Part shown: in pieces, positions 1 through 53,639 of the stretch
How positions within the stretch are numbered: position 1 is the first letter of the stretch
Layout of the letters: the number at the start of each line of letters is the position of its first letter
Assembly: GCF_030144855.1 (NCBI RefSeq)
Contig: NC_082722.1
Location: forward strand, 19,344,001-19,408,000
DNA: 64,000 nucleotides
Origin: Hypanus sabinus
Taxonomy: Eukaryota
Direction: 5' to 3'
Translations under genes and position numbers: made by a program
The notes under the pieces: generated by a model
Seen by the model: only the letters and a program-made list of their open reading frames with translations
Databases searched by the model: none
What the model was told of the DNA's origin: nothing

Positions 1-1397
1 AAATTCCCATCCCGGACTAAATTTTTTGTTTGTACGTTTTCCCATAACCGTATGATTTACTTCGGGCGCTCTGACCTGCTCCACATTCCAAAGGGGAACG
101 GCTGAGTATGCTAATTTGTCACATGGGTGTAACTGAGCGGTACGAACTAGTAGGGTCTCACGGCTCTGTTACAATGCTATATCTCAAAACCAAATTAAAA
201 TGTTATTCACAATAAACTGTCTGCTTTACCTGAGATTAGATAATACGCATTTCTAGCCGTCAATCTTTGCGAAATCCTTTGCTGTCCCTCATATTTAGTG
301 ATTCATAGGCAGTGGCGTGCTCAACAGCTACTTGGTTAACCTGCTAGAAGGACACATTTAATACTGCTAACTGGTACATAGGTCAGTCACCATGAACATA
401 AAACTAATCATAGAAAAGGATCAAAAACGGTTCGAATGACATTTAGTCTGCGTGGAAAGATATTGCCCGTATATTATACCGGAAGTGGGATACCAAATCC
501 ATTTCAGGCTGTAAATCGCTACCATTACTTTAGATTTCCAAACAAGAAGTTAGAACCTTCCTATCTTCTCAGTTTTGGCCATTTCTTTTGCTTCATCTCC
601 GTTGTCATATCCCTTACGTACCCTTAATTTTGGACATGAACTTTATCCCATTCTTTTGTCTTACGCACCATGTCAAATAATTTTAATGACCAGATTTCGT
701 CCCCGTGGTGCAATTAGAAACTGTGCCCCTTAAAACTCGCATTATTTGATTTAAGAAGATTAGAACAAATGGCAAGACCTGATGTGCTTACGCAACTAAA
801 AGAGCAAATATGGGAGAGGCATCTTACACGCTGTTGAGCTGATCGGTTTTGCTGGTGAATCAAGTAAATTACAATGAAATAAGTAGACCAGTTGGACATG
901 CTCGTTATAGTAAATCGTTAAAATAGCATTTGTCTGGCTGAAGTAATTACAAAGCATTCCAAGGGAATGAAGCAACAGTAAATAAAACATAATCTTGAAA
1001 TTTCCAGCTTCAACTTAGATGTTACTGTCATGTGCAGTCCTTCATTTCGGGAAGTTCTACGAGCACTGATGGATGTATTACCGAATTCTACTATAATGAA
1101 GCCAGTATTATATACGAAAACATTGTTTTGGTGATGTCGAAAGTTGCTGCAGCAACTATCGTTACGTAAATAAAAATATGCTCTAAAATTGGGAAGGTGC
1201 TTAATGGAACACAAGCAGACGTTTTCAGTTGTCGACAGATGGGTATACAACCGATACACATTTTTAAATGCTTACAGGAGAATCCAGGTGCGACAAATTA
1301 AATATCATTGAACCGCTGGAAATTTAAAGTAAATGGACAAATAAAACATATGGTCGACCAGGGAACACGAGAGCAAAGAGAAACAGTTAACATTTAT

Positions 1398-2655: not shown

Positions 2656-2699
2656 CGGATCTTCTTTCTGATATCCATCGAAAGAATTTGTGTTACCCC
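2656..2699 (-). CDS. Receptor gene 1, first cytoplasmic exon (GGNTNSFDGYQKEDP)
   Basis: Strong acceptor tttctgatttcttttctgaag| and donor CCG|gtaggt. The 44-bp exon is open in the incoming phase 1. The terminal exon was not identified. Confidence 0.6.
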
Positions 2700-3333
2700 C
2701 TTCAGAAAAGAAATCAGAAAGAAATGATTTACATTGTAAACATTGTGTACGTTATTCATTCGACACGAATCGAATTAATCGTGTAAGTGGAACTGCTGAA
2801 TAATTGATTGGTAACAGTCGTTGGTAACCCTAATATACTGTGTTTTGCATTCACCTGGTGCTATGCTCAAAAGGATTTGATATTCAACGAGTCTGTAAAG
2901 TGATAATAGCATAACAGCGGCGGTACCGTATTTAAGTATGGCAACCAAAATGGAAATTAAAAACAAGGAGACGCAGATAAGTTGGTTAATGTTCTTTACA
3001 CAACCAGGGGGAGTTGAGATAAACGTAAAGTCGTTTACGTTACAAACTACGGACCTGCCACTGTATTAACAAAAGATATTTGAAGAACTCCAAAGGGATA
3101 TAACAGCATTCGTAAATCAGATATAACATACTTCCAGTGGACTGGTGAAATAGTTGAACTTTATGATCAAGCATGCATCGTGCCAGAATATTATCACTGA
3201 AATCCATCTTCGAAAATGGCGATCCATGTCCAATCATTCTGTAAATGTCATTTACTGTTTTGAAATTAAATGCCATTAACGCTGCTATTTTGTACGAATA
3301 GAGGTGAAGTTTCACAGCGATCAGTGTTCTTAC

Positions 3334-3432
3334 CGTGCGATCTCTTTAACTTGAGTTTCAGCAAAACTATTATCGCAATTAAAATTACCGATCCGCCCAA
3401 TGCACATCTGAGAATCAATATGGTATCAGCAC
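3334..3432 (-). CDS. Receptor gene 1, transmembrane exon with Arg
   Basis: Acceptor ctgtttctttttgaag| and donor G|gtaaga bound a 99-bp phase 1-1 exon: GADTILILRCALGGSVILIAIIVLLKLKLKRSH. The hydrophobic run is followed by a basic stop-transfer stretch. It is homologous to the copy-3 TM exon. Confidence 0.85.
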
Positions 3433-4439
3433 CTTCAAAAAGAAACAGTGAAGCATTTATACATCTGAAAACAAATCCACGCATGGAAATCAATAATGCA
3501 AACTATTATATAGGGGCCTTTCAAATCTCACTACACACTGATAGGAAAATGACAGAATATACAGTATAGAACAAAGAAATCTGCTTTATTTTCTGCAGAC
3601 ACATATGAGCTATTTACTAAGACTAAGAATAGGCTCTGCTGCTTTTTCCTTTTCTTGTCTTGACAATAGATATCAGTATAACTATTGAACGTGTAATCAC
3701 CTAACCTATTACAAGTCTGATCTCCATTCAACCTTCTATGTTACGTCTGTCATTAACATTCTTCAGAACGATCAATACTCTATACTCGTCAAAAGAGTCG
3801 CGGTGCAGAAACAATTCGTTTCCGCATGACATGCTGAAATTACTCGCTAAATTCATGAGATTATAACACTTTACGCTCTAAGCATCCTGAATGTACAGTT
3901 ACATATTAAACGTATTTTCCCACTTTTATTTTTTCCACAGCTTTACGAGTAACAAACCTGAATTAATGGGAAACTGCATAATGAAAACATAGATAAACAC
4001 GAGTCATCTATTTGAACTGTGTTGCCCACTATTATTGGAAGGGATTACACAGAGACTGAGTTTTGTCAAAGTCTGTTTACAGTTTCGCTCCCTCTGTATT
4101 CGATCCAGGTGGCAATTAAGTGTCACACATTGGTGTTCAGGAATTCCTACCTTGATTCTGATTTTGCCCCATGCCCGCATTTTTCCGGTAAAACTATATC
4201 AATTGAATACACCTTCACTCACCAGCAGATGGTTTCCCCTTTTTTTATATCATTATGCGATTTAGAGTTTAAGTTTTGCATTGTCTCATCTTTGACAGAT
4301 GTTCGGAAGTTTGTTACCTGACACGGACCACAGGAAATCAATTTCTTAATTAATCCTACACGATTTAAACTGTGGGTATAAGATATTTGTTTTTAAGCAC
4401 TATTCACATTGAATGCCTAACTTTAGATTCTATTATTGG

Positions 4440-5890
4440 GCAATTAATATTCAATATTTAACCTTTCCGACAAAAGATTTGGATGAAATTCAATGTCCAA
4501 GTTGAGTGAACCTCGAGTGCGAGTCTGTACTGGGCTCTATTTGGCTTCTATTTTAGGGGCCCCGCTTCCCTTTGCACTTACTAAAGTGAATAAACAAACC
4601 AGTAATCCAATAACTAAACATGCAATACGAATATGGGTTTCAATTTCGTAAATTTTTGGATTGAATAAATTTCTCCTATCAAGTCTTATTGTATCAATTT
4701 TTCTTCAGAACTGATCAAGCTTTTCTTTTATGGAAAATGAACAGCATAACATGTTTTCGTGATTTATTCATGGATAATCGTCTCAAGTTTTCTGAACTGT
4801 TTTCTAATACGTATAATTTGCGTAGATCACATTTTACAGATATTTACAGATTAGAATCTTCTTGAATGCTATTTTACCTACTTTTCTGATACCACATCAA
4901 ACTGAAATTACAGGAAAAAAAATAGGCTTAAACCCCTGTCAGAAGAGTTTAAGAGCAATTATTTATGATCGGATTACGAAAATTCGTCTAGGTGCATCAG
5001 ATAAAATTACGAATGAATGGGAAATAGAACTTCAGTTATCTTTACCTACAGAGAAATGGGAGAAAATTCTCCAACTTGTTAACACCTCTTCAATGTGTGC
5101 CAGGCAAGCTTTAATACAATTTAAGGAGGTTTATAGGGCCCATATTTCTAAGGATAAGTTAGCTCGTTTTTATTGCCATATGAATTCTGTCTTTGTAATT
5201 CCGAGGTGGCTTCCATGACAAAAATGTTCTGGTCTTGTTCTCTTCTGGAAAAATACTGGAAGAACGTTTTTGATATTATTTCAGTGGATTTGCGCATTGA
5301 TTTATATCCTCACCCTATTACTGCAATTTAAGGATTACCAGTAATCATTTATCCCATTCATCTTGCTGTTTGATTGCATTTCTTACATAATGGACAGAAG
5401 ATCCATTTTATTTAAATGGAGAGAGTTTAGTCCCCCTACCATATTTCAGTGGTTTTCTCAGACTATAACATGTTTAAACCGGGAAAAAAATTAGAAGTGT
5501 TACTTTCGATCCTTAGGTGAAATTTGAAGTATTTTGGAGGACATAAATGTCAGGTGACCTTTTCCGAATCTTTCTCAATAACCTTCTGTTCGTGTATAGA
5601 GGAGCGGAGTTAATGACAAATATTGGTTTTAACCGGTCAAACACGACAGTCCAGCTTTTGTTTTGTTTTGTTTTTTTTTTGTTTGTTTGTTTTTAGTTTA
5701 GCGGGACTTGTTTTGTATAAAAGTTTTTGAATCTTTTTCATGTTCAGTTATTAAGAGATTGGGAGGCTCAGATTACACATGCTTTTCGGAGTTTGTGTTT
5801 GTATACTGACCGTGAGTCATCCCGATCCCTTTGTATTATGATCATTAGTATGTTTATTAATTCGAAACTTAATTAGGAAACGATTAAGAA
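4440..5890 (+). mobile_element. L1-clade LINE, ORF2 C-terminal and 3' UTR fragment
   Basis: ORF 4862-5218 (WEIELQLSLPTEKWEKIL...SSMCARQALIQFKEVYRAHISKDKLARFY) is typical of fish L1/Tx1 ORF2 C-termini, and a T-rich 3' UTR follows. Confidence 0.75.
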
Positions 5891-6167
5891 AGAAAGAGTG
5901 TTCATTGTTATCAAGTAATCTGAAAATTTCGCCCTTCTTCCGTGTTTGGGAAGCTTTTCAGTGACTCTTCTTACCCACGTTTGATCGACACACAGATATC
6001 ATTTGGAAACGTTTCCATCTTGCCCGGAGCGCTAGAGATTCTGAACATGTTGAATATTCAGAGTAACACACAAAATACTGAAGTTACGCAGCAGAAAGGA
6101 GAGGAATAAAATTACGACATTTCGGTCCGATACCTTACACCAGGAAGCAATTAAGACACCATCTTAC

Positions 6168-6216
6168 CTTGTTCCAGGATGTAGCTGAAACTGACAGGCA
6201 CCGTGAGAGAGACATG
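6168..6216 (-). pseudogene. Partial duplicate of the 3' end of the gene-1 C1 exon (HVSLTVPVSFSYILEQ) with its own donor
   Basis: Near-identical to 6609-6657, and the homology runs about 13 bp into the intron (gtaagatggtgtctt vs gtaggctggtgtctt). Confidence 0.85.
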
Positions 6217-6608
6217 CTTTATCATATTTTTAGCAAATGTGCAGAAGTTTGCTACCTTACAGCTATAGAATGGTTTCAATTTCATCATTCGTGCTACACG
6301 ATTTAGAGCAACAGGAACAACACATCAGCTTCTGAACACCTTTCTCGTTTGCTATTCACTGTCAATAACTGATCTTTAAAATTAGTCATTCTTCCTTGTA
6401 GCTATTCAGTTACTGTTCTTACAACGTCACATTGATCCCACCACTATCACTTGCTTACATCTTATATTAAGCGCAAAGCATTCTGAGCATGCTGATATCC
6501 AGAGTTACACAGAAAATCCTGGAAGAACTCCGCCGATCAGGCACATCTAAAATATCGACGTTAAAGGCCGAGACCCAACATCATTACTTCATCAAGACAC
6601 CAGCCTAC

Positions 6609-6902
6609 CTTGCTCCAGGATGTAGCTGAAACTTGCAGGCATCGTGAGAGAGACAAGCGACACCAGGCAGGTGTAAATATCTTTTCCCCATGCAGACTGC
6701 GTGATTTCCAATAAACTAGAAGCATCGTACGTGCCATCAACGTTCGGGTTTGTGACACTTTCTATTCCAATGTGAATTCGTTTCTTATTTCTTTGCCAAA
6801 CGATTTCTAATTTCTCCGGGTAGAAGGCAGCCGTTTTACAAAGAAGCTTTCGAGGAGACGAAAACCCTCCAACAGGAACAATTTCCAATGGAGTTGGAGG
6901 AA
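6609..6902 (-). CDS. Receptor gene 1, C1-set Ig domain exon
   Basis: Acceptor tttgtttttattcaag| and donor G|gtaggc bound a 294-bp phase 1-1 exon. It translates to VPPTPLEIVPV...KLLCKTAAFYPEKLEIVW...NVDGTYDASSLL...YTCLVSLVSLTMPASFSYILEQ, with the C1 hallmarks CxxxxFYP, W, DGTY and YxCxV. Confidence 0.92.
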
Positions 6903-7899
6903 CTTGAATAAAAACAAAGTTATATTGGGTATTTTCGATCCATTTCAGTGCAGGTAGATTTCTTCATTTTCACATCAACTGGCATGTCACTCTAACTATC
7001 AAATGAGTTACCCGCCAGTATTAACCGGTATCTAATAAATTATTTTATTTTGCCATTCTGTTTATTGTTGCACAACCAGACGCACACACCACTGAGCGAA
7101 ACTTTGCTCTTCTGGGGCCAAGTTGAAAAATACGGTACTGTGTAGTGTATGCAGTCACACACAGCAAATGTAGTAACCATTCATACAGACAGTCACAAGA
7201 TAAGTAGAACAAATACGCTAATCTTGGGAGACAGAGGAAAGGAAGAGTTCAGAGAATACAATTCGACGGAGAAGCTAAGTGTTCGGAAGTGAGGAAGACA
7301 TTCTCTTTTGAATGGTATTTGAGATTTTTTTTGCACATTTTTTGCACAGTTAAATTTGGAATCCTCGCTACTTTTGGGTTTTTCATTTCATATTAAGACT
7401 GAGCTACAAAAAAACAAAATATCACAGATTTCTATCGTGATGGAGTTTAATTTTCTGGCAGCTCAACTGCTTAGAGAGTGTTTCAGATCTTGGGATTAAT
7501 CTTCCTAGTCATAAACATCCAGTAATAGAGCTTTCCCCGGAATTTAAATCATTCTACAACAGTTCCCCGTATTGAATGTGCGGATCATCCCTCAGTGAAA
7601 AAATCCAGTACGCAAATGCAAATTGATATTATGCACATTGATTCTATTGTTCTATTCTCTCTAAAGCCTGAAGTCCTGCAGCGAGATGGTCGACAGTGAC
7701 TTGGCACTGCTATAGGATCGCTTATGGAAATGATGCCTTGCAGAAGTTCAAACAGGAACTGAACAGCTTCAATTTCACCGTACACAGAGTGCACTGAAAC
7801 GTGAGCACAATTTTAAGGTTTTGTAAACAGGGACTGCGTCCGCTACAGCTATGGTCGGTGTCTGACAGGAGAGATTCAATAGTTAGATTGCTTTATCTG

Positions 7900-10690
7900 T
7901 TTCTCACTGCAGTGAGGATTTCACTCTGCCTACAATAGCTATCCCATGCTCACCGTTGCCCGACTCCACTTCCCATGCGACATTGACTTCAATTTTCTTG
8001 GCCTTCTCAAATTCTAGGTGAAGGACAATCCCAAGGTGTAAAAAGTCGAAGCTTTCTTCATATACATTAAGGGTAAAGGGATATGGACAAATAAAATTGA
8101 TCAATTTGAAGATCAGCGAGTTCAACAATGAATGTAGCCTAAAGAGATTGTTGGTGGGCGGGAAGATCTAATCTATTTCCATCAGTGTTTACTCGGGAGA
8201 CGTACACAGAGGCTATACAACTAAGCAAAACAGAAGTAATGCCATGGTCCTTATACGGATTACAATCTTGGGGCAAATTGGGGTGCATATATCCCCAGAA
8301 CATGGCAAGGTGTCCGATCGGACATCGTTGGAAGCTAATGCAGAAAGTGAAAGGGCCCCGATGAAACTGTTCAAAATGTCCTTACCATTGGATGTTCCGG
8401 AGAACAAGAGTATAACTTATGTTTTAAGACCATATGACTATTGGATATAGGAGCCGAATTAGGCCACTTCAGCCATCAAGTTTGTTCTGGGCATTTCATC
8501 ATAGCTGAAATTTTCTTCTCAGCCCCAATCTCATGTCTCCTCCCCATCATGCCCTAACCAATCAAGAATATATCAAACCCTGCTGTAAATATTCAGACTT
8601 ATAAAGACTTTGTCTCTATAGCTGCATGTGCCAAAAAAAAAAACTCCACTGGTTCACCACTCTCTGGCTTTAGACATTCCTTCTCATCTCCTTTACAAAA
8701 GGATGCCTATCTATTCTAAGGTTGCGTCCTCTGATCTTAGTCTCTCCCAACATAGGAAACATCCTCACCACATCCACACAATGACGTCCTTTCACCTTTA
8801 AATAGGGTTCAATAAAGTCGGCCTTATTTTTTTTCTGATTTCTAGTGGAAACACGCCCATAGCTCTTCATATCATTAGCTATTGAATTGTGAAATCATTG
8901 TCATGAACCTCTTTTGAACCCTCTCCAGTTCCTCCACATTCTTCCAAAGATAAGTGGCCTCAAACTGCTGACAATATGCAGTGACACTTCACCACTGCTT
9001 TCTAAGTACGAATATTCATACTTGCTTTTATATTCTAGTCCTCTTGAAAAGAATGCTGTCATTTTATTTGCCTTCCTGACCACAGAGACAACCTGCAAAT
9101 TAATCGGCATGGAATACTGCACACCGACTCCCAAGAACCTTCGCACAATGTTTTTGGACTTTCCCTCTAGTTAGAAAATAGTCGAAACGTTCACACACTG
9201 AACCAAAGTGCATGACCACATTCCTCTACACGTTGCATTCTATCTGCCATTTCTTTGCCAATTCTCCTAATCTAAGTCCTTCTGTACCCTCTTCATTTCC
9301 TAAAAAATATTTTCATACCGTCTGCAAACTTTGCAACAAAACCACCAATTCCATAATCCATGTCATTGACAAATTGCTTTAAGCGATTCCCTCACAACAC
9401 AGACCCCTGTGGAGCACCGTTAGTCACAGGCAGCGAAACAGATATTGCTCCCTTTATTCCCATTCTTTGTCTCCCACCCACTGCTTTATCCACCCTCGAA
9501 TCTTTCCTGTAATACTTTGGGCTTGTAGCTGGTTAAACAGCCGTGTGTCAAAGGCCTTCTGAAAATCCGAGTACACAAAAACCGATTCTACCTAGCTTTC
9601 TCGATCCTGCTTATCATTCCTTCAATAAATTCAATCAGATTTGTCTGGCGAGAGCTTCCCTCGAGGAAACAGTTCTGACTATGATATGTTCTATTATGCG
9701 TCTCCAAGTTACCTGAGACCTGATCCTTAAAATCGGAATCCAACATCTTGTCAACCAGTGAGGTCAGACTGACTGGCCTATAGTTTTCCTTGTCTGCCTC
9801 TCTGCCTTCTTGAAGAGTGGGCTCTGCATGGGATGGTAGGTTGATCAAGAACTTTCGCTTGGCATTCAGGATGAAGGAGTCAATGGTATCTAACTTTGGC
9901 TTCGCGGAGAATCCAGAGTATGTAGCAGATAGTTGTTCTTTGAATGACGTGGTGACAAGTGGTGTGCTGCATGGCTTTGACAGCTTGCCGCAGGTTATAG
10001 ACCAGGTGTAAAGATGGGCTGAAAATGGCAGATAGGATTAAACGAAGGTAATTGTAAGCTGTTGCGCTTTGAGAAGACAAACCAATCTCGGATTTACACA
10101 GTGAAAGAAACTGGAATTGAGGAGTGCGGTAAAAAAAAAATCATCCTGGAGTATAGATCGAGAAATCTTTGAAAGTGGAGCCAAAGACGGATAGTATCGT
10201 AAAGATAGTCTTTGTCCTATTGGCATTTATATATCAGAGTATTGAACGTAGAAGTTGGGATGTTGTGCTGAAGTTGTATCAGAAGTTAGTGAGATCAAAT
10301 TAGGAGCATTGTTCGCTGTTCAGGTTATCTATCTGCAGCCAGTTATCAATAAGATTGAATGAGTTCAAGTGAACTTACAAGGAGTTTGCAAGATTTGAGG
10401 ACATGAATTACGAGGAAAGATTTAACTGGTTAGATTTTTTTTACCCATGATTCGTATAAGAATGAGCGAACGTTTGATAGAGGTAGACAAAATAATGAAG
10501 GGTGCAGATACGGTGCAGGAAAGCCTGCTTCATCCACTGAGGTTTGGTGAGAATATAATTCGAAGTCAGAGCTTAAGAGTCAAAGGAGAAGCATCAAAGT
10601 CAAACCTGAGAAGAAAAATCTTCATTCAGACCGTGATGCTATTGTGGTAATATCTGCCAGCGGAGGTGTTGAATGAGGGTTTGCGCTCGC
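7900..10690. mobile_element. Decayed CR1 LINE fragments in the V-C1 intron of gene 1 (+ 7900-8420, - 8435-9830, + 9870-10680)
   Basis: RT-region motifs ENYRPVSLTSLVDKML, LIEFIEG, MPMLGETKIRG and VVRKANKMTAFFSRGLEYKSK. Confidence 0.85.
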
Positions 10691-11461
10691 CTTTCTGCAG
10701 TTTACTGTCTAACCCCATCAGAATTCACCTCGATCTTGAGAGGTCTGTATTTCTCCTCATTTTGTGTGGTGAAAGAAATATAGAGTTCGCTAATACTGCA
10801 TGACACAAGTTGGAATGACAACTTGCAGGGCATGTGAGAAATGGTCACGATGTTGGAATTATCTCGATTGGAACTGGGTGTTATTCCTCTCTACTTGTAG
10901 ATGCGGAAATGGAGCATTGTGCAGCTGCATACATACTTTTTAATGGAGATTATATACGTTTTCATATATTTTGCGTCCTCTGTGATGACGAATCGAGTTA
11001 TACAACTCCGGACATTCTCATTAGTATGAATAATGTTTCGACTTCTTGCTTGCAAAACAATCCTAACCCTGCTTGTAAAGTAACTCGTTGCATTGAGAGT
11101 ACCTTCGCGATGATAAGGGTAAAGTCCAAAGGTATCACAAACCTTGGTCATTAGTTTAAAATAGGAGATACCTGATGAACAGGGCTGGATGAACAGCAGC
11201 GGGAAAGAGCCTAGGGAAGTACGATACGATAAACTAAATTAACTCTATCATGCGCCTTGAAGCTGCTACATGAAATGTGATTAATTCTTCTGTTCTTTAT
11301 AATTGCGAATTGAGAACATCTGGACTGGGGTATATTTAAACGTGGGAAAGGAATGTATTCTCGCCGTTTGCTTTATCAAGAATAAACATTTCGTTTTATC
11401 CTCACCACTAAGTTTGATGTAAAATGCACAGAGATGAAAATATCCAAACAGCCACACTCAC

Positions 11462-11767
11462 CGAAAACAGTGAGCCTGGAGCCACTTCCTCTCCCGTAAG
11501 ATCGTTCTTGATACTTTGCTTCACAGTAATACAGTCCGGAGTCGGCGACTGTGACATTCCAGAGTACAAGTGCTCCCCTTCCCGTTTCGACATTAAATTG
11601 TCTTCTGCTGTCATTTTTTAAAAATGTCTTGTCGCCGTCCCTCCACCAACGAACGTCAGCAGTATCTTGTGATAGTGGAAACATGCAGAACAAAGTAACA
11701 TTCGCACCTCGCAGGACGTTCTGGTCCTTAGGTAATTGAGAGACTTTGCTCGCAGTTACTTTGACGG
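11462..11767 (-). CDS. Receptor gene 1, germline-joined VJ-type Ig domain exon
   Basis: Acceptor ttatttttccggcag| and donor G|gtgagt bound a 306-bp phase 1-1 exon. It translates to VKVTASKVSQLPKDQNVLRGANVTLFC...VRWWRDG...DSGLYYCEAKYQERSYGRGSGSRLTVF, with B-strand Cys, C-strand Trp, DxGxYYC and a J-like GSGSRLTV G strand in the same exon. Confidence 0.93.
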
Positions 11768-11971
11768 CTGCCGGAAAAATAAGCAAGAGTGTTATTAACA
11801 GTCAAACACAATCAATTAACAAAAAATCAACGACGTAATTCAGTGGACATCTAATAGATAAAGACGACCGAATATCTGAAACACTGGAACCAAATATGCT
11901 GCGGGCGCCCAGGATTAAATATTCTAAAATAGAATATTCAGTTCGGAAGCCGCAGGAATAAATCAGCATAC

Positions 11972-12026
11972 TTAGCCAAGTAATAGTCATAAATGCCATG
12001 AACGAAACCGTAAATATCTCCGACAT
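11972..12026 (-). CDS. Receptor gene 1, leader exon (MSEIFTVSFMAFMTITWL + phase 1)
   Basis: ATG at 12026, 18 mostly hydrophobic codons, then A|gtatgc donor. The exon is 55 bp and a 204-bp intron separates it from the V exon. A+CC joins in frame. Copy 3 has a homologous 55-bp leader. Confidence 0.8.
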
Positions 12027-20735: not shown

Positions 20736-21335
20736 TGTTATGGTTCAATCCGTAGCACGCAATCCGTCCGCGGCCTCTGGACTCCGGGTCTCGTAGCCGT
20801 CCCTCCTTTCACCCTTAAGCAAAAATGGGATCATCTTGGCTTAAGGAGGCGCATCTGATGCCTGTCAGCTGGCAGGTTTATATAACGGGCTCTGGCAGTT
20901 CGTCTAGTTGGGGGTCATTCTGTTTGTCTTGTTCTCGCTGCTCCCGCTGTTCCGTCTTGTTCACCTTGTTCGCGCTGTTGCTCTGTTCGCCTGTCTACCC
21001 CTTTAGACCTGGTTGTCCTGTTTGCGCTGGTCGCCCGATTTATCCAGTTCCGACCTGTTCGTCATGTTTGCCCTGCTTGCGCTGTTCGCCCGGTTTCGTT
21101 CTGTTGATCTTGTTCGCCCCGGCTTGGAGTACCCACCGTTAATCTTCGAGTTCTGTGAGTCAGTCTCAGAGTCACCCAGGACCGAGCTCACTTCCTATCC
21201 CTTGCCTCCGTCGGGTGAGCCCGGCCGGACTACCGTTGCCCGGCGGGGAACTCTGCCCTTTCCTACCCCTCGCTTCCGACGGGTAGTGCTCCGCAACCTG
21301 CCCAGGCCCTTGTGTTCCTGCCTGGGCCGGGCGCT
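20736..21335. mobile_element. LTR-like CpG-rich element, right end truncated or undefined
   Basis: Starts tgttatgg, has internal ttgttcgc-type short repeats and no protein signal. It abuts CR1 sequence on the right. Confidence 0.45.
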
Positions 21336-21336
21336 G

Positions 21337-24300
21337 CCCTTGACCTATGAAAGCTAACATCTCATAAGGTTTCTTAACTACCCTATCTACCTGTGAGGCA
21401 ACTTTCAGGGATCTGTGGACATGTACACCCAGATCCCTCTGCTCCCCCACAGTACCAAGTATCCCGCCATTTACTTTGTACTGTGCCTTGGAGTTTGTCC
21501 TTCCAAAGTGTATCACATCACACTTCTCCGGGTTGAACTCCATTTGCCAATTCTCAGCCCACTTCTGCATCCTATCAATGTCTCTTTGTGTCGTCTGCAA
21601 ACTTGCCAACACTTCCAGTGCCACATCCAGGTCGTTAATAAAAATTACAAAACGTTGAGGTCCCAGAACAGATCCTTGTGGGACAGCACTAGTCACAAGA
21701 CCCAAACTGAATGTACACCCTCCACCAGGACCCTCTGACTTCTGCAGGCATGCCAATTCTGAATACACTTGGCCAAACTTCCCTGAGTCTCGTGCCTTCT
21801 GACTTTGTGAATAAGCCTACCGTGTGGAACCTTGTCAAATGCCTTAATAAAATCCATGCAGATCACATCCACTGCACTACCCTGATCTTATATGACTGGT
21901 CACCTTCTCAAAGAACTCTACCAGACTTGTTAGGCACGAACTGTCCTTCACAAAGCCATGCTGACTGCCCCTGATCAGACGATGATTCTCTAAATGCCAA
22001 TAGATCCTATCTCTAAGAATCTTTTCCAACAGCTTTCCCACCACAGACGTAAGGCTCACTGGTCTATCATTACCTGGACTATCCCTACTACCTTTTTTGA
22101 ACAAGTGGACAACATTCGCCTCCCTCCAATCCTCCGGCACCATTCCCGTGGACAACGAGGGCATAAAGATCCGAGCTAGAGTTTCAGCAATCTCTTGCGA
22201 GCTTTCCTCGTGGAGCAGCCTGGAGAATATTCCGTCAAGCGTTGGGGACCTATCCGTCCTAATGAATTTTAACAGCACCAACACCTCCTCTCCCTTAAAA
22301 TCAACTTGCCCCAGAACATCAGCCTCACTCATATTGTTCTCACCGTCATCAAGTTCCCTCTGAATGGTGAATACCGAAGAGATGTATTCATTGAGGACCT
22401 CGCTCACTTCCACAGCCTCCAGGCACTTCTTCCCACGTTTCTCTCCAATCGGTCCTACCTTCACTCTTGTCATCCTTTTGTTCTTCACATAATTGAAGAA
22501 TGCCTTGGGGTTTTCCTTTACCCTACTCGCCAAGGCCTTCTCGTGACCCCTTCTCGCTTTTCTCAGTCCCTTCATAAGCTCCTTTCTTGCTACCCTATAT
22601 TCCTCAATAGACCCATCTGATCCTTGCTTAATAAACCTCATGTATGCTGCCTTCTTTCACCTGACTAGATTTTCCACTTCACTTGCCACCCATGGTTCCT
22701 TCACCCTACCATTCTTTATCTTTCTCACCGGGACAAATTTATCCCTAACAACCTGCAGCAGATCCTTAAACATCGACCACATGTTCATAGTACATTTCCA
22801 TATATAACCATATAACAATCACATCACGGAAACAGGCCATCTCGGCCCTCCTAGTCCCTGCCGAACTCTTAAGCACACCTAGTGCCACCTACCCGCAATC
22901 ATCCCATAACCCACCACTCCTTTCTTGTCCATATACCTATCCAATTTAACCTTAAATTACACAACTGAACTGGCCTCTACTACTTCTACAGGAAGCTCAT
23001 TCCACACAGCTATCACTCTCTGAGTAAAGAAATACCCCCTCGTGTTTACTTTCAACTTTAAACTTTTGCCCCCCAACTCTCAAATCATGTCTTCTCGTTT
23101 GAATCACCCCTACTGTCAATGGAAACAGCCTATTCACGTCAACTCTATCTATCCCCCTCAAAATATGCTGATTATACTAAGGTAGGAGATCACTCTGTTC
23201 CACTGCATTCCTCAATGCCCTACCATTTACCCTGTATGTTCTATTTGGATTATTCCTGCCAAAATGTAGACCCTCTCACTTCTCAGCATTAAACTCCATC
23301 TGCCAACGTTCAGCCCATTCTTCGAACCGGCATAAAACTCCTTGCAAGCTTTGAGAACCCACCTCATTATCCACAACACCTCCTACCTTAGCATCATCGG
23401 CATACTTACTAATCCAATTTACCACCCCATCATCCAGATCATTTATGTATATTACAAACAACATTGGGCCCAGAACAGATCCCTGAGGCACCCCGCTAGT
23501 CACCGGCCTCCATCGCGATGAACAATTATCCACCACTACTCTCTGGCATCTCCCATCTAGCCACTGTTGAATCTATTTTATTACTCCAGCATTAATACCT
23601 AACGACTGAACCTCCTTAACTAACCTTCCATGTGGAACTTTGTCAAAGGCCTTGCTGAAGTCCATATAGAGTACATCCACTGCCTTACCCTCGTCAACAT
23701 TCCTCGTAACTTCTTCAAACAATTCAATAAGTTTTGTCAAACATAACCTTCTACGCATAAATCCATGCCGGCTACTCCTAATCAGATCCTGTCTACCCAG
23801 ATAATTATCATTACTATCTCTAAGAATACTTTCCATTAATTTACCCACCACTGATATCAAACTGACAGGTCTATAATTGCTAGGCTTACTTCTAGAACCC
23901 TTTTTAAACAAGGAAACCGCATAAGCAACACGCCAATCCTCCGGCACAATCCCCATTTCTAATGACATCTGAATGATCACCGTCAGAGCTCCTGCTATCT
24001 CTACACAAACTTCCCTCAAGGTCCTGGGGAATTCCTGTCAGGACCGGAGATTTATCCACTTTCAAATGTCTTAAAATCGCCAGTACTTCCAGCTCTTTAA
24101 TTCTCATAGGTTCCATAACTTCCTTACTTGTTCCCCACACCTTACTCAATTCAATATCCTTCTCCTTAGTGAATACCGAAGGGAAGAAATCGTTCACAAT
24201 CTCTCCCTTCTCGCTCGGCTCCACACACAGCTGACCACCCTGATTCTCTAAGGGAGCAATTTTATCCCTCACTATCCTCATGCTTTTAATAAAACTGTAG

Positions 24301-26910
24301 AAACCTTTCGGATTTGCTTTCACCTTATTTGCCAAACCAACCTCGTATCTTCTTTTAGCTTTTCTAATCTCTTTCTTAAGATTCCTTTTACATTCTTTAT
24401 ATTCCTCGAGCAATTCCTTTACTCCATGCTGCCTATATCTATTGTCGACATCCCTCTATTTACGAACCAAGTTTCTAATATACCTTGAAAACCATGGTGC
24501 CTTCAAACCTTTAACCTTTCCTTTCAACCTAACAGGAACATAAACATTCTGTACCCTCATAATTTCACCCTTAAATGACCTCCACTTCTCTATTACATCC
24601 TCCCCATAAAACAACTTGACCCAATCCACTCTCTCTAAATCCCTTCGCATCTCCTCAAAGTTAACCTTTCTCCAATCAAAAATCTCAACTCTTGCTCCTG
24701 TCCTGTCCTTCTCCATAATTATATTGAAGCTAATACTATTGTGATCACTGGACCTGAAGTGCTCCCCAACACATACATCTGTCAGCTGACCTATCGCATT
24801 CCCGAACAGGAGATCCAACACTGCCCCATCTTTAGTTGATACTTCCATGTATTGTTGCAAAAAACTATCCTGCACACATTTCACAAACTCTAAACCATCC
24901 AGCCCTTTTACAGAATGGGCTTCCCTATCTACGTGTGGAAAATTAAAATCTCCCACAACCACCACCTTGTGTTTACTACAAATATCTGCTATCTCCTTAC
25001 ACATCTGCTCTTCCAATTCACGCTCCCCATTAGGTGGCCTATGATACACTCCTATCAGTGTTACTACACCTTTCTCATTCCTCAATTCCACCCAAATAAC
25101 ACCCCTAGAGGAGCTTTCTAATCTATCCTTCCAAAGCATCGCCATAAGATTTTCTCGGGCAAGCAATGCAACACTTCCTCCTCTGGCCCATCCCACTCTA
25201 TCACACCTGAAGCAACTATATCCAGGAATATTTAGTTGCCAATCACACCCTTCCTGCAACCATGTTTCACTAATAGCTACAACATCATAATTCCAGGTAT
25301 CAATCCACGCTTTAAGCTCATCCACCTTTCTTACAATGCTCCTAGCATTAAAATAGATACATTTAAGATACTCTCCACCTCCTCCTCTCTTTTCATCCCT
25401 AACAATGCATTCAAATTTATTATCCTTTTATTTCTTCTCCCCTACATCTTCGGGCTGAGCGCATCCCTTCTCCATCACCTGCCTTTCCTCCCTCACACAC
25501 TGTCTACTTACTTGCTCTACTAGTGAACTAACCTCCTCTCCCATAGTTCCCTCAAATTGATTCCCGCCCCCCCCCCCATCTTACTAGTTTAAAGTCTGCC
25601 CTGTAGCCCTAGCAAACCTCTCCGCTAGGATATTGTTCCCCGCAGGATTCAAGTGTAACCCATCCTTCTTGAACAGGTCACTCCTGCCCCAGAAAAGGTT
25701 CCAATGATCCAGAAACTAGAATCCCTGCCCCCTGCTCCAATCCCTCAGCTACACATTCATCCTCCACCTAATTCCATTCCTATCTCACTGTCGCGTGGCA
25801 CAGGTAGTAATCCCGAGATTACTACCTTTGCGGTCATTCTTCTCAACTGCCTTCCTAACTCCCTATACTCTCGTTTCAGGCCCCTGCAAAAACAACATCC
25901 CTGCAAAAACAACTTCCCAATTCACACCCGCAAGTTCTAGCCTTATAGCCTCATAATTTGCCCTTGCCTAATTAAAAAAATCCTGACTTCTCTCATTCTA
26001 TCCCTTTCTATGGTAATGCTAAAGGCCAGGGAGCGGTGATCACTGTCCCCCAGATGCTCAACCACTGACAGATTAGTGACCTGACCCGGCTCGTTACCCA
26101 ATACTAGTATGGCATTCCCCCTAGTCGACCTGTCAACATACTGTGAAAGGAATCCATCCTGGACACACTTAACAGACTCTGCCCCATCTAAACCCTTGGA
26201 ACTAATCAAGTGCCAATCAATATTAGGGAAGTTAAATTCACCCACGACAACAACCCTGTTATTTTTGCACCTTTCCAAAATCTGCATCCCAATCTGCTCT
26301 TCAGTATCTCCGCTGCTACCTGGGGGCCTATAGAATACCCCCAGTAGAGTAACTGCTCCCTTCCTGTTCCCGACTTCCACCCATACTGACTCAAAAGAGT
26401 ATCCTGCTACATTACCCATCCTTTCTGCAGCTGTAATAGTATCCCTGACCAGTAATGCCACCCCTACTCCCCTTTTCCCCTTCTCTATCCATTTTAAAGC
26501 ACAGAAATCCAGGAATATTGAGAATCCATTCCTGCCTTGGTGTCAGCCAAGTCTCCGTAATGGCCATTACATCACCTTTGTTCCTAATGCATCTTGCATT
26601 GAAGTCCACACACTTTAGCCCTTCTACCTTACTACCTTTACGCCCTTTATTCTGCTGCTCTTTCCTTAAAGCCTCTCTAAATATTAGATCTGACTTTACT
26701 CCATGCACGTCTTTCACTGCTCTATCGCTCTGGGTTGCATCCCCCTTGCAAATTAGTTTAAACCCTCCCGAACCATGCTAACAAACCGAGCAGCAAGTAT
26801 ATTGCTGGACCTCGAGTTCAGGTGCAACCCATTCAACCTTTACATGTCCTACCTTCCCCAGAAGAGATCCCAATAGTCCAAAAATCTAAAACCAACTCCT
26901 CAGCCACACA
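21337..26910 (-). mobile_element. CR1 LINE (EN 25920-26460, RT 21340-22800) interrupted by a second CR1
   Basis: ORFs contain GVPQGSVLGP, NPKAFFNYVKNK and VWVEVGNRKGAVTLLGVFYRPP. The host sequence acatttcc|...|ctgcaaaaacaacttcccaattc resumes across the insert. Confidence 0.9.
22801..25900 (-). mobile_element. Nested CR1 LINE with EN domain, RT fragments and (ATATGGTT)-type 3' tail
   Basis: EN ORF 24456-25325 (NYDVVAISETWLQEG...VVVGDFNFP...SDH) and the tail ccatataaccatataac at about 22801-22817. Confidence 0.9.
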
Positions 26911-32272: not shown

Positions 32273-32490
32273 NNNNNNNNNNNNNNNNNNNNNNNNNNNN
32301 NNNNNNNNNNNNNNNNNNNNNNNNNNNNNNNNNNNNNNNNNNNNNNNNNNNNNNNNNNNNNNNNNNNNNNNNNNNNNNNNNNNNNNNNNNNNNNNNNNNN
32401 NNNNNNNNNNNNNNNNNNNNNNNNNNNNNNNNNNNNNNNNNNNNNNNNNNNNNNNNNNNNNNNNNNNNNNNNNNNNNNNNNNNNNNNNNA
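32273..32490. other. Assembly gap (218 N)
   Basis: Run of n. Confidence 1.
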
Positions 32491-35139: not shown

Positions 35140-35440
35140 CAAGCAACGCAATACCCGAGAGCAATTTTTATTTCCGAAAAAATGTCGCTGAATTTTCACT
35201 TGACGGCAATACACTCCACAGTCTGCTACACTAGCATTTAGGAGGGTAAATGTGCCCTTGCTACTCTTTACACTGAACTACTATTTTCTGCTGACTGATT
35301 CTAAAACTGTCGCCCTCCAAACGAAACTTCAGCAACATTATGTAGAATTGGAAATCTGCAGAATATGGATTCAGTGTTGCCGATTAAGAAGTTTAAGATC
35401 AGAAGGATTGTTCCATTTTGGCGGAAGTTGCTTTTACGGT
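35140..35440 (-). pseudogene. Receptor gene 2, decayed VJ exon
   Basis: Fragments ESIFCRFPILHNVAEVS and FSVKSSKGTFTLLNASVADCGVYCRQVKIQ align to copies 1 and 3. It has frameshifts and stops, and the acceptor is mutated (tttgtcaa|CC). Confidence 0.88.
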
Positions 35441-35489
35441 TGACAAAGCATAAATGAGAATGATGAGAACAGTTGAATACACCGGACAA

Positions 35490-36920
35490 AAAATCTGCAG
35501 GGGCCCGAGCAGATATACTTAAATTGTCCGTATCTACGTGTGAGATGCCAGAGGATTGGAGGATAGCTTATGTTGTTCTGCTGTTTAAAAAAATACTCTG
35601 AACTTAGTCCGGATAATTATATGCTGGTACGTTTGACGTCGGTAGTAGGTAAATTATTGGAAGGAGTACTAAGAAATAGGATCTACAAGTATTTAGATAG
35701 ACAGGGATCTATTCGGGAGAGTCAACATGGCTTTGTGCCTAGTAGGTCATGTTTAAAAAATCTTTTAGTGTTTTTCGAGGAGGTTACAAGGAATGTGGAT
35801 GAAGGCAAGGCTGCGGATGTTCTCTACATGGGCTTCAGTAAGGCCTTTGACAAAGTCCCGCATGGGAGGTTAATTAGGAAGATTCAGTCGCTAGGTATAA
35901 ATTCTGAGGTAGTAAATTGGATTAGACATTGGCTCAATGGAAGAAGCCAGAGAGTGGTGGTGGAGGATTGTTTCTCTGAGTACAGGGCTCTGACTAGTGG
36001 TGTGCCACAGGGATCAGTGTTGGGTCCATTGTTATTTGCCATCTATGTCAATGATCTGGTTGATTATGTGTTAATTGGATCAGCAAATTTGCTAATGATG
36101 CAAAGATTGGAGGTGTAGTGGACAGTGAGGAAGGTTCTCAAAGCTTGCAAAGGGATTTGCACCATCTGGAAAAACGGGCTGAAAAATGGCAGATGGAGTT
36201 TCACACTGACAAGTGTGAGGTAAACGGTAGGGCACTGAGGAGGGCAGTAGAATAGGGGCATCTGGGAATACAGATGAAAAAGTCCCTAAATATTGCGTCA
36301 TAGGTAGATAGGATAGTAAAGAGAGCTTTTGGTACATTGGCCTTTATAAAACAAACTATTGAGTATAAGAGTTGGAATGTTATAGTGCGGTTGTAAAATG
36401 CATTGATGAGGCCGAATTTGGAGTATTATGTGTAGTTTTGGTCTCCGAATTACAGGAAGGATATTAATGAGGTTGAAAGAGTGTAGAGAAGATCTACAAG
36501 GATGTTGTCGGGACCTGAGAAACTGAGTTACAGAGAAAGGTTGAATAGGTTAGGACGTTATTCACTGGAACGTGAAGCATGAGGGCAGACTTGATAGATG
36601 TATATACAATTATGATGGGTATTGATGAGTGAATGCCAGCAGGATTTTTCCACTGATGTTATGGGTGAAAAAAAAATCCCGAGGACATGGAGTAAGTGTG
36701 AAGGCGGTAAAGTTTAAAGGGAACATTGTGGGGTGGAGGGCTTCGAAACACTTTTATCATTTAAGAAATACTTGGACAGGTACGTGGATGAGAGTTGTAT
36801 GGAGCGATATGGTCCAGGTGCAGGTCAGTGGGACTAGGCGGAAATATGGTTCGGCACAGCCAAGAAAGGCAAAAAGACCTGTTTCTGTGCTGCAATTATC
36901 TATGGTTCTATGTTTCTAAG
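35490..36920 (+). mobile_element. 5'-truncated CR1 in the leader-V intron of gene 2
   Basis: RT ORF 35570-36118 (SKAFDKVPHGRLI...GVPQGSVLGPLLF) and a 3' tail ctatggttctatg. Confidence 0.9.
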
Positions 36921-37837: not shown

Positions 37838-40800
37838 GGCAGTTAGAAAGGGGCACGACTGCGCAAGCGCGTGGAAGTCCGCCCGTCAGGCAGCGGGAGA
37901 ATTTAAAAAGCGAGCTGATGAACGTAGTAGCGGGAAACAGAGTAGAGAGATACATAGTAGGAAGGCTTTGGCTCGAGAGGCTTCGGCGTGCAGAGACTGA
38001 GGACGAGCTTCACCCCAAGTGAGGTAAGGCCAGATAAGTTCCTTTAATTAATGTAATTACCTTAGGGGTAGGTAATGGAGTCAGCAGTTAGGGCAGTCGA
38101 GTGCTCCGTTTGAAGTATGTGGGAGGTTAGGGAAGGCACAATTGTCCCAGATGACGACACCTGCAAAAGGTGCATCAAGCTGCAGCTCCTGACAAACGGT
38201 GTTAGGGAACTGGAGCTGGAGCTGGATGAAATTCGGATCATTCGGGAGGCAGATGCAGAAATAAACATGAGTTAAAGGGCGAGAGTAACCCCTAAAATCA
38301 GCAGACAGGTAGCTGGGTGACTGTCAGAAGAGGGAGGTGGATTAGACAGAATGAGCAGAGAACCCCTTTGGCGGTTCCCATCAATAATAAGAAATTGTTG
38401 GTGGGGACGACCCTGCAGGGACAAGTTGCATTAGTTGCGTCTCTGGCACCGAAACTGGACCCTCAGCTCAGAAGGGAAGGAGGGCAAAGAGGAGAACAGT
38501 AGTGATAGAGGATTCTATTTTTAGGGGGTACAGATAAGAGGTTCTGTGGAAGAGATCGAGAATCCCAGATGGTCTGTTGCCTAGATACAAGCAGGGAGGG
38601 GAATCAAAGTTTAGGAACAGATATATGGGAGAGGGAAGAAAAGGAAGATCGTTAAGTTGCTTGCACCGTTAGTGATAAACAGGAAGTAAGAGGTGGAAAA
38701 TTTTTAAGTACAATTATTTTAATGCTAGGAGCATTGTAAGAAAGGTGGATGAGCTTAGGGCTTGGATTGATATCTGGAAATATGATGTTATAGCTATTAG
38801 TGAAACCTGGTTTCAAGAGCGGTGTGATTGGCAAATAAATATTCTTGGATTTGGTTGCTTCTGGTGTGATAGAATCGGAGGGACGGGGGTTGTTGCATTA
38901 GTTGTCAGAAAAAAATATTACAGCGGTTCTCTGGGAGGATAGATTAGAGTGCTCGTCTAGGGAGGCTTTTTGGTGGAAATGAGGAATGGGAAATGTGTAG
39001 TAACACTTATAGGGGTATATTATAGACCACCTAATGGAGAGCGAGAATTGGAGGAGCAAATTTCTAAGGAGGTAGCAGATATCTGTAGTAAGCACAGATT
39101 TGTGATTGTGGGAGATTTGAATTTTCCACACATAGACTGGGAAGCTCATACTGTAAAAGGGCTGGATGATTTGGAATTTATAAAATGTGTGCAGGGTAGT
39201 TTTTTGCCGCATTACATAGAGGTACCAAGTAGAGAAGGGGCAGTGTTGCATCTCCTGTTAGGGAATGAGAGAGGTCAGGTGACGGAAGTAGGTACTGGGG
39301 AGCACTTCGGGTCCAGTGAACATATTGCCATTAGTTTCAATATGATTATGGAGAAAGATAGGACTGGACCCAGGGCTGAGATTTTTGATTGGAGAAAGGC
39401 TAACTTTGAGGAGTTGTGAAAGCATTTAGAACGAGTGGATTGGGACCATTTGTTTTATGGCAAGGATGAAGTAGAGAAATGGAGGTCATTTAAATGTGAA
39501 ACTTTGAGGGTACAGAATCTTTATGTTCCTGATCAGTTGAAAGGAAAGGTTAAAAGTTTGACAGAGCAATGGTTTTCAAGGGATATTGGAAACTTGGTTC
39601 GGAAAAAGAGAGATATCTACAATAAATAAAGGCAGCATGGAGTAAATGAGGTGCGTGAGGAATATAAAGAATGTAAAACGAATCGTAAGAAATAAATTAG
39701 AAAAGCTAAAAGAAGATACAGAATTGATTTGGCAAATAAGGTAAAAATATATCGAAAGGGTTTCTACAGTTATATTAATAGCAAAACGATAGTGAGGGAT
39801 AAAACTGGTCCCTTCGAGAATCAGAGTGGAGAGCTATTTCTTGGTATTCACTAAGGAGAAGGATATTGCATTGTGTGAGGTAAGGGATACAAGTAAGGAA
39901 GTTATGCACACAATGATTATTAAAGAGGAGGAAGTACCTGCACTTTTACGGAATATTAAAGTGGATAAATCTCCGTGTCCTAACAGGATATTCCCTACGG
40001 TTTTGAGGGAAGTTAGTGTAGCAATAGCAGGGTCTCTGACAGAAGTATTTCAAATGTCATTAGAAACGGAAATGGTGCCGGAGGACTGGCGTATTGCTCA
40101 TGTTGTTCTATTGTTTGAAGATGATTCTAAGAGTAAACATAGTAAACATAGGTCTGTAAGTTTGACGTCAGTGATGGGTAAATTAATGGAAAGTATTCTG
40201 AGAGATGGTATATATAATTATCCGAATAGACAGGGTCTGATTAGGAATATTCAGCATGGATTTGAGCGTAGAAGGTCATGTTTGCCAAATCTTATTGAAA
40301 TTTTTGAAGAGGTTACTAGGAAAGTTGATGAAGGTAAAGCAGTATATGTTGTTTATATGGACTTCAGTAAAGACTTTGACAAGGTTCCACACGGAAGTTT
40401 AGTAGGAATGTCTGATGGTTAGGTATTAATATTGAAGTAGTAAAATGGATTCAACAGTGACTGGATGGGAGATGCCAGTGAGTAGTGGTGGCTAACTGAT
40501 TGTCAGGTTGGAGGCCGGTGACAAGTGGTGTGCCTCACGGATCTGTATTGGTCCAGTGTTGTTTGTCATTTACATTAATTATCTGGATGATAGGATGGTA
40601 ATTTGGATTAGTAAGTATGCAGATGTTACTAAGATAGCTGACGTTGTGGATAATGAAGTAGCTTTTCAGAGCTTACAGAGTGATTTGGGCCAGTTAGAAG
40701 AATGGGCTGAAAGATGACAGATGGAGTTTAGTGCTGATAAGTGTGAGGTGCTACATTTTGGTTGGAGTAATCAAAATAGTACATACATGATAAATGGTAG

Positions 40801-48679: not shown

Positions 48680-50530
48680 GTTCCCCGAGGTTCCTATGTG
48701 AAGGGAAAGAAGATAGTTAAGAACAATGTTGGCCCCTTGAAGAATGAATTGGGAGAAATTGTTATGGGAAACAGGGAAATGGCAACATAATTTAATGCGT
48801 ACTTTAGATCTGTCTTCACCAGGGAGGACACAAGCAATCTCCCAGATGTATGGATGGGCCAGGGTCATAGATATCAGAGGAATTGAGACAGATTGACATT
48901 AGGAAAGAAACTGTGATGAGTAGACTGGTAGGACTGCAGGCTAATAAATCCCCGGGTCCAGATGGTCTGCATTCGAGGGTTCTAAAAGAGCTGGCTCAGG
49001 AAATTGCGGATGCATTGGTAATCATTTTCCAATGTTCCTTAGATTCAGGATCAGTTCCTGAAGGTTGGAGAGTGGCTAATGTCATCCCACTTTTCAAGAA
49101 GGGAGGGAAGGAGAAAACGGAGAACTAACGCCCTGTTAGCCTAACGTCAGTCGTGGGGAAGATGCTTGAATCCATTATTAAGGACGAAATAGTGGCACAT
49201 CTAGAAGACAGAAATAGGATTAGGCCGAGCCAGCATGGATTTACCAAGGGCAAATCATGCTAGACTAATCTGTTGGAGTTTTCTGAGGATGTAACAAGGA
49301 TGTTAGACGAGGGTAAGCCAGTGGATGTTGTATACCTAGATTTTCAGAAGGCATTCGATAAGGTGCCACATAGGAGATTGGTGAGTAAAATCAGAGCTCA
49401 TGGCATTAGGGGCAGTGTTTCAACATGGATAGAAAACTGGTTGGGAGATAGAAAGCAAAGGGTAGCAGTGAATGGGTGTTTCTCGGACTGGCTGGAGGTG
49501 ACTAGTGGGGTACAACAGTGCTCTGTATTGGGACCACAGCTCTTTACGATTTATGTCAATGATTTAGATGAGGGCATTGAAAACTATATCAGCAAGTTTG
49601 CTGACGATACTAAACTGGGTGGCAGTGTGACATGCGAAGAGGACGTTAGGAGAATACAGGGAGACTTGGATAGGCTGGGTGAGTGGGCAGATCCTTGGCA
49701 GATGTCATTCAATGTGAATAAATGTGAAGTTATCCACTTTGGAAGCAGGAACAAGAGGGCAGAATATTGTCTGAACGGTGTAGAGTGAGGTAAGGGAGAA
49801 ATGCAAAGAAACCTAGGAGTCCTAGTTCACCAGTCAATGAAGGTGAATGAGCAAGTGCAACAGGCAGTGAAGAGGGCAAATGGAATGTTGGCCTTTGTTA
49901 CAAGGGGAATTGAATACAAGAGCAAGGATGTCCTTTTGCATTTGTACAGGGCCCTGGTGAGACCACACCTGGAATATTGCGTACAGTTTTGGTCTCCAGG
50001 TTTAAGGAAGGACATTCTGGCAATTGAGGAAGTGCAGCGTAGATTCACTAGGTTGATTCCTGGGATGGCAGGGCTGTCTTACGCAGAGAGATTGGAGAGA
50101 TTGGGCTTGTACACGCTGGAATTGAGGAGATTGAGAGGGGATCTGATTGAAACGTTTAAGATAATTAAAGGATTTGATAGGATTGTGACAGGAAATATGT
50201 TCCAGATGTTGGGAGAGTCCAGTACCAGAGGGCATGGATTGAGAATAAGAGGTCAGTTATTTAAAACAGAGTTGAGGAAGAGCTTCTTCTCCCAGAGAGT
50301 TGTGCAGGTGTGGAATGCACTACCTCGGAAGACGGTGGAGGCCAGTTCTCTGGATGCTTTCAAGAAGGAGCTAGATAGATATCTGATGGATAGGGGAATC
50401 AAGGGATATGGGGACAAGGCAGGGACTGGGTATTGATAGTGAATGATCAGCCATGATCTCAGAATGGCGGTGCAGACTCGAGGGGCCGAATGGTCTACTT
50501 CTGCACCTATTGTCTATTGTCTGTTGTCTC
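48680..50530 (+). mobile_element. CR1 LINE RT region, relatively young, with (CTATTGT)n tail
   Basis: ORFs 48883-49128, 49273-49788 and 49801-50436 with few lesions (YLDFQKAFDKVPH, ISKFADDTKLGG), and a ctattgtctattgtc tail. Confidence 0.93.
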
Positions 50531-53587: not shown

Positions 53588-53639
53588 CTAGATCATGTAA
53601 AAAAAAAGTAACTGTGAAACATATATACATATATAGAGA

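Follow-up and report, generated by a model that had tools for sequence, protein, structure and literature searches.

A putative short-tail, charged-transmembrane member of a SIRP-like receptor family in the ray Hypanus sabinus

Exons of the gene and the family to which it belongs

The window examined here is a stretch of 64,000 nucleotides from the ray Hypanus sabinus (assembly GCF_030144855.1, contig NC_082722.1, positions 19,344,001 to 19,408,000 of the forward strand). Near its start, on the minus strand, lies a gene whose predicted product is a receptor-like membrane protein with one V-set and one C1-set immunoglobulin (Ig) domain. Five exons make up the open part of this gene. They are listed below in the order in which they are joined, with positions counted from the first letter of the window.

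11972-12026, minus strand: exon 1 (55 bp, ending in phase 1), with the start codon and most of the leader, which is split
11462-11767, minus strand: exon 2 (306 bp), a single-exon VJ domain (V-set) with a J-like strand of the form G-x-G-S-x-L-T-V
6609-6902, minus strand: exon 3 (294 bp), one C1-set domain, which begins VPPTPL
3334-3432, minus strand: exon 4 (99 bp), a stalk, a transmembrane (TM) segment (…LILRCALGG…) that contains an Arg, and a basic stop-transfer stretch
2656-2699, minus strand: exon 5 (44 bp, ending in phase 0), cytoplasmic

An AG acceptor and a GT donor are found on all five exons, the first four junctions are of phase 1, and joining the exons yields 798 nt, or 266 codons, without a stop. 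The spliced product is 88% identical to residues 1-266 of an annotated protein of Hypanus sabinus, P0163 (350 aa; BLASTP E 7e-177), and 60-73% identical to 15 other ray proteins, with alignments that are collinear and gapless at the exon joins. The leader agrees with that of P0163 at 16 of its 18 residues. Because the product aligns in this way with P0163 and with these 15 ray proteins, the splice junctions and the placement of the gene in their family are confirmed, and the gapless match to residues 1-266 of P0163 excludes chance as the origin of the exon set. A first-pass annotation of this DNA had proposed five minus-strand exons with GT-AG sites, compatible phases and an open frame of 266 aa. 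Splicing and the alignment to P0163 bear this out, with four exons lying where they had been placed and the fourth shifted by one base to the position given above.

Pfam recognizes a V-set domain in exon 2 (7e-10) and a C1-set domain in exon 3 (4.8e-11). Within the VJ exon, the G strand G-S-G-S-R-L-T-V-F directly abuts a GTGAGT donor, and a heptamer-spacer-nonamer scan found no recombination signal sequence (RSS) within 300 bp of the exon on either strand. The exon also has all 13 invariant columns of an alignment of 24 V domains of the family, including the family-invariant C, WW, D-x-G-x-Y-x-C and the J motif G-x-G…V. The earlier proposal of a germline VJ exon with its own J-like strand and no RSS is thus supported by the Pfam match and the scan. 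The same can be said for the proposal of one true C1-set domain followed by a TM Arg and a short cytoplasmic part, which agrees with the second Pfam match and the spliced frame. No second C1 exon was found between 3432 and 6609.

C1-set domains are distinguished by (F/Y)(F/Y/H)P at the BC loop, 13 residues from the Cys of strand B to the Trp of strand C, and x-V-x-H after the Cys of strand F (PMC2785349). The C1 domain of the window gene has the first two of these three features, with FYP at the BC loop and the spacing of 13 residues, and at the third it reads L-V-S-L where the family form is L-V-S-H. It is otherwise of the family type, in that it has the VPPTPL start and …F-Y-P…, and only the His of Y-T-C-L-V-S-H is altered. 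The exon as a whole is 84-89% identical to the C1 domains of P0002 and P0163. Intron 3 holds a partial copy of this exon as well, in the form of a 111-nt direct repeat (77%) at 6107-6217 on the minus strand that copies 6548-6658 and lies 441 bp downstream. The repeated segment joins the exon's 3′ end to the first part of the intron that follows. The repeat retains the His codon missing from the functional C1 exon and is more like P0163 at that place.

A HMMER search of 1.84 billion representative proteins with the C1 exon recovered about 30 single-C1 proteins of 40-84% identity, in which the C1 domain occupies residues ~120-220. The family plan comprises a leader, a VJ domain, a C1 domain starting VPPTPL and a TM segment of the type L-I-x-G-C-A-G-G-L. 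In most members, the TM segment is neutral and is followed by a tail of 100-150 residues with three or four tyrosine motifs that resemble immunoreceptor tyrosine-based inhibitory motifs (ITIMs) or switch motifs (ITSMs), among them A-Y-A-S-L-N, I-Y-S-Q, L-T-Y-A-A-L and L-Y-A-D-V. The matches listed in cluster look-ups and in a collection of 5.8 billion proteins are all from cartilaginous fish and represent at least 11 genera of rays, sharks and a chimaera (Mobula, Hypanus, Hemitrygon, Pristis, Narcine, Amblyraja, Heterodontus, Scyliorhinus, Chiloscyllium, Heptranchias and Callorhinchus). A profile of the family C1 domain gives members 100-149 bits and the best non-member 52 bits, and because of this gap the family is sharply bounded. 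The window gene is one copy of this chondrichthyan-wide multigene family of VJ-C1 receptors, which has turned up in all sampled genomes of cartilaginous fish. A literature search for a described shark SIRP-like family found none.

The names that NCBI has assigned to members of the family conflict with one another. Many members bear a SIRP-alpha or SIRP-beta label. Among the names are 'tyrosine-protein phosphatase non-receptor type substrate 1-like' (SIRP-alpha; PTPNS1-like), 'SIRP-beta-1-like', 'NCR3 ligand 1-like' (NCR3LG1-like; B7-H6-like), 'Ig lambda-1 light chain-like', 'M1-specific TCR beta chain-like' (TCR, T-cell receptor), 'tapasin-related', 'PD-L1-like' and 'class II DP alpha-like'. 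An AlphaFold model of the ectodomain and TM segment of P0163 has a mean predicted local distance difference test (pLDDT) score of 83.6. Its matches among Swiss-Prot models tie across B7/butyrophilins, TCR beta, SIRP-alpha, TAPBPR, CADM and Ig light chains (E 1e-11 to 1e-12; 15-23% identity), and this tie accounts for the inconsistent names. Among structures in the PDB, the same model matches Ig light chains and TCR beta. In profile searches of that database with the family V and C1 domains and the P0163 ectodomain, multi-domain Ig, titin and contactin chains prevailed and no ranking of SIRP, NKp30 or B7-H6 emerged, and a protein atlas search with the V exon returned generic V-set and I-set clusters only. 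Names also vary with which exons a gene model includes. For example, P0202 of Callorhinchus, in which the C1 exon is skipped to leave V, TM and an ITIM tail, is an isoform named 'NCR3-like' by NCBI.

Membrane span, tail and state of the gene

The TM segment of the window gene reads L-I-L-R-C-A-L-G-G where P0163 has L-I-L-A-C-A-L-G-G, such that Arg replaces Ala in the outer third of the span. At this column of the alignment, the short-tail Mobula proteins P0169 and P0173 also have Arg, and P0003 has Glu. P0163 has a tail of 106 residues with three tyrosine motifs. In the window gene, the frame continues past 2656, and two sequences might form its 3′ end.

2599-2699 (including exon 5), minus strand: read-through of the exon-5 donor, with 18 further codons and then TAA at 2599-2601
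230-340, minus strand: exon 6, the first tyrosine-motif tail exon, located by tblastn with the tails of P0163, P0002 and P0197

NCBI models of two Mobula proteins, P0003 and P0166, end in the homologous exon-5 read-through. Exon 6 has a good acceptor and donor and keeps the motif T-A-Y-E-S-L, which is followed by TGA at 260-262 and TAA at 236-238. Its closest counterparts are the last coding exons of P0165 (Mobula), P0197 (Hypanus) and P0179 (Hemitrygon), and these three proteins stop at the same '…RII' position and carry Lys or Asp in the membrane span. With either 3′ end, the distal motifs L-T-Y-A-A-L and L-Y-A-D-V are lost; a distal ITIM/ITSM exon would fall beyond the start of the window. 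The description of the gene as apparently intact therefore holds for the ectodomain and TM exons, but not for the inhibitory tail exon 6 with its stop codons. Likewise, the five-exon series from leader to cytoplasmic part was correctly recognized, but it does not extend to the end of the frame.

A tree of the ectodomains of 66 family proteins and the window gene places charged-TM short-tail forms next to ITIM forms in several separate clades. Neighbors of this kind are the window gene and P0163, P0169/P0173 and P0164, P0199 of the chimaera and P0186, and P0096 and P0187. From these sequences, the family appears to consist of paired inhibitory and activating receptors, in which long-tail members with a neutral TM segment would be inhibitory and their short-tail, charged-TM sister copies would be activating or adaptor-coupled. 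Proteins of sharks and the chimaera (P0199, P0184, P0065 and P0096) also share a membrane exon with Arg near its outer end and Asp near its inner end (…R…IIVDH/Y…). This exon suggests an ancient activating lineage that is separate from the point-mutated type of the rays.

We consider it probable (roughly 60%) that the window gene encodes a functional receptor, namely a germline-encoded type I membrane protein that is a short-tail, charged-TM member of this paired SIRP-like family. An ectodomain matched to that of an inhibitory relative, a new Arg in the membrane and a tail cut short by stops are what is expected of the usual route to activating partners. The distal tyrosine motifs would have been lost either because translation ends after exon 5 or because of the exon 6 stops. 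With exon 6 included in the transcript, one T-x-Y-x-x-L motif would be left and the product might be a mixed receptor.

An alternative explanation is that the locus is a young pseudogene, in which a duplicated inhibitory gene is decaying from its 3′ end and the TM Arg is an incidental missense change. The two nonsense codons in exon 6 are in keeping with such decay, and several other observations count against a functional receptor. The change from His to Leu in the C1 hallmark after the F-strand Cys is unique to this copy. The TGA in exon 6 is an extra stop, 8 codons upstream of the usual stop of the lineage, and no canonical poly(A) signal was found close after the read-through stop. The window's two further copies of the family are pseudogenes, and the region around the gene abounds in transposon fragments, namely those of long interspersed nuclear elements (LINEs). 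Furthermore, the 5.8-billion-protein collection yielded no matching product: a near-identical protein was not among the family-search matches, the best of which is 88% identical, although no exact look-up of the product was made. Because no such protein is among the matches listed, the gene appears to be unannotated or called a pseudogene. It is also a burden on the functional reading that it supposes that the gene would be expressed, that its V domain would bind the same ligand as the inhibitory partner or a similar one, and that its Arg would recruit an adaptor with an ITAM (immunoreceptor tyrosine-based activation motif) of the FcR-gamma, CD3-zeta or DAP12 type.

Against the pseudogene explanation, all 798 nt over the five exons are open and the splice sites are all intact. 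At positions in the ectodomain and TM segment that are invariant in 16 close relatives, the window gene has 3 unique changes, versus 0-4 in annotated relatives. The exon 6 TAA is common to annotated proteins of three genera, all with charged TM residues, and an Arg recurs at the same column in short-tail genes of Mobula. On balance, we regard the pseudogene explanation as possible but rather unlikely, and a functional charged-TM, short-tail receptor as the better reading of the locus.

Other elements in the window

No genes other than copies of the receptor family were found in the window. The most complete of the two further copies is a pseudogene paralogue in the same orientation, which is 72-76% identical to P0037/P0027. 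The recognizable parts of both copies are as follows.

52728-61374, minus strand: pseudogene paralogue, full extent
~61282-61374, minus strand: leader relic of this pseudogene
60096-60386, minus strand: its V exon, with 2 stops
58625-58906, minus strand: its C1 exon, with 1 stop
~53486-53587, minus strand: its TM exon, with an in-frame stop and with Gly where the window gene has Arg
52728-52829, minus strand: relic of its last exon, with the Tyr lost
35152-35518, minus strand: decayed remains of a further V exon of the family, disrupted by a frameshift and stops

The open reading frame (ORF) that reads through after the TM exon of the pseudogene is conserved with P0173 and P0037. For the V relic at 35152-35518, no matching C1 exon was found nearby.

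Much of the remaining sequence is repetitive. LINE fragments with long ORFs resembling reverse transcriptase (RT) and endonuclease occur at 21000-26500, 35570-36120, 38900-40420, 41660-43330 and 49270-50440, and the 22-26 kb stretch has a strong negative GC skew. RT-like ORF fragments (…NYRPVSLTS…) are also present at 8900-9850, inside intron 2 of the receptor gene. A run of 217 N at 32273-32489 marks an assembly gap or a masked stretch.

Comparison with known receptor families

The C1 search also matched proteins outside the family, one of which is a V-C1-C1 protein of the coelacanth Latimeria named 'SIRP-beta-1-like'. Over the J strand and C1 domain, it is 29% identical to P0163. We built a C1 tree with this protein, pig Ig lambda, fish MHC I and multi-C1 proteins of white shark, skate and coelacanth as outgroups, a small set with automatic names that is without TCR, shark Ig light chain, tapasin, B7-H6 and MHC II. 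The family is monophyletic in this tree (ultrafast bootstrap, UFBoot, 80) and is sister to the first C1 domain of the coelacanth protein (UFBoot 94; FastTree 0.75). A grouping inside the SIRP family had been named in the first-pass annotation as an outcome that would speak against its interpretation. The C1 domain does fall beside that of a SIRP-like protein, although among few outgroups. Given these few outgroups and their automatic names, the SIRP affinity of the family may be taken as a lead, not as a result.

Non-rearranging receptors with V and C1 domains are central to ideas on the origin of antibodies and T-cell receptors, and the first-pass annotation had regarded the window gene as a rare relic of a non-rearranging antigen-receptor precursor, either of the PRARP/Xenopus VJC1 class or of a new lineage of this kind. 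The VJ exon followed by a true C1 domain, the split leader and the lack of an RSS would all fit such a relic, and Ig light chains, TCR beta and UrIg2 are among the best sequence and fold matches. However, each genome has dozens of paralogues of the gene, which include ITIM-tail forms and their charged-TM partners, and the same architecture defines SIRPs. Moreover, its C1 domain groups in the tree with the coelacanth SIRP-like C1 and not with the multi-C1 proteins, which are possibly of the UrIg2 type. We therefore consider a relic of this class improbable, and the claim of an isolated precursor relic or of a new PRARP/VJC1-type lineage is unsupported in view of a large paired family in at least 11 chondrichthyan genera. 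SIRPs themselves have been discussed as relatives of antigen-receptor precursors (PMC2785349). The likeness to PRARP lies in a VJ-C1-TM plan that does not rearrange, going by the title of a paper of 2019 and the text that cites it (PMC10751288), and is a comparison by description only; no PRARP sequence came up in the searches.

The UrIg and UrIg2 genes provide a second point of comparison. Like the window gene, they are from elasmobranchs and have a single-exon VJ, a split leader, C1-type constant domains and no rearrangement. Of the solved structures that match the C1 exon, UrIg2 (PDB 9dmx) has the highest summed score. UrIg is a secreted protein with three C domains, and UrIg2 has nine or more C domains (PMC12227049), whereas the window gene has a single C1 domain, a TM segment and the tails of an ITIM family. 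The number of C domains thus sets it apart from both. Furthermore, the multi-C1 proteins of shark and skate, which are possibly UrIg2, score ~45-48 bits on the family C1 profile, on which members exceed 100, and in the C1 tree these multi-C1 proteins are not the sister group of the family.

A germline-joined Ig light-chain or TCR cluster, as known in cartilaginous fish, would account for the light-chain-like fold of the ectodomain and for the names of those members that NCBI has called 'Ig lambda-1 light chain-like' or 'TCR beta chain-like'. However, identity to Ig and TCR chains is only ~20%, and the family has a TM exon and ITIM tails. Its C1 profile also sets members ~50 bits apart from all other C1 proteins, and there is no RSS relic at the V-J join. 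This origin is very unlikely.

A germline VJ exon, a TM Arg and a short tail are also features of NKp30 (NCR3), and two motifs of the window gene, W-R-D and G-x-G-x-x-L-x-V, recall this receptor. It is without a C1 domain, whereas the window gene has a C1 exon. Perhaps, then, the gene might be a receptor of the NKp30 family that has retained an ancestral C1 domain. The VJ exon, TM Arg and short tail of the window gene agree with this idea, as does the name 'NCR3-like' that NCBI gave to the C1-skipped chimaera isoform. That isoform, however, is a member of the present family minus its C1 exon, and it has an ITIM tail. In addition, no match to the V exon came from a word-based search of proteins in the size range of NKp30 (75-238 aa), and the Arg is a recent change relative to the 88%-identical inhibitory relative. 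We find membership in the NKp30 family scarcely credible.

If exon 6 is spliced into the transcript, then the product would resemble KIR2DL4 and NKp44, which are mixed receptors, in combining a charged TM segment with one ITIM/ITSM-like motif. The Ig domains of these receptors are unrelated to those of the window gene, and the analogy is one of design only.

Thus, the locus adds no new kind of non-rearranging V+C1 gene, but shows a large and poorly named SIRP-like family in cartilaginous fish. It is useful for annotation of this family and as a case for the evolution of paired receptors, and is not a discovery in its own right. It is tempting to speculate that the family corresponds to SIRP in cartilaginous fish or is sister to it, and that it represents an ancient VJ-C1 system of paired innate receptors that predates the split between chimaeras and elasmobranchs, although at present this is a tentative proposal that we would not favor strongly. 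If true, the family would count among the nearest extant non-rearranging relatives of the kind of gene that the RAG transposon entered, and the window copy would be an inhibitory member on its way, by a few point changes, to becoming a short-tail partner with a charged TM segment.

Among the known systems closest to the family are the SIRPs (SIRP-alpha, -beta and -gamma; PTPNS1) of bony vertebrates. Several differences are clear. The family has one C1 domain rather than two and hence not the V-C1-C1 ectodomain of SIRPs, and its identity to mammalian SIRPs is ~15-21% in structure alignment. The TM charge of SIRP-beta is a Lys, whereas that of the family is Arg, Asp or Glu at other positions. 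In both systems, however, a non-rearranging, VJ-type V domain is directly followed by true C1-set domain(s), and in both, ITIM-tail forms are paired with charged-TM, short-tail forms that have nearly identical ectodomains.

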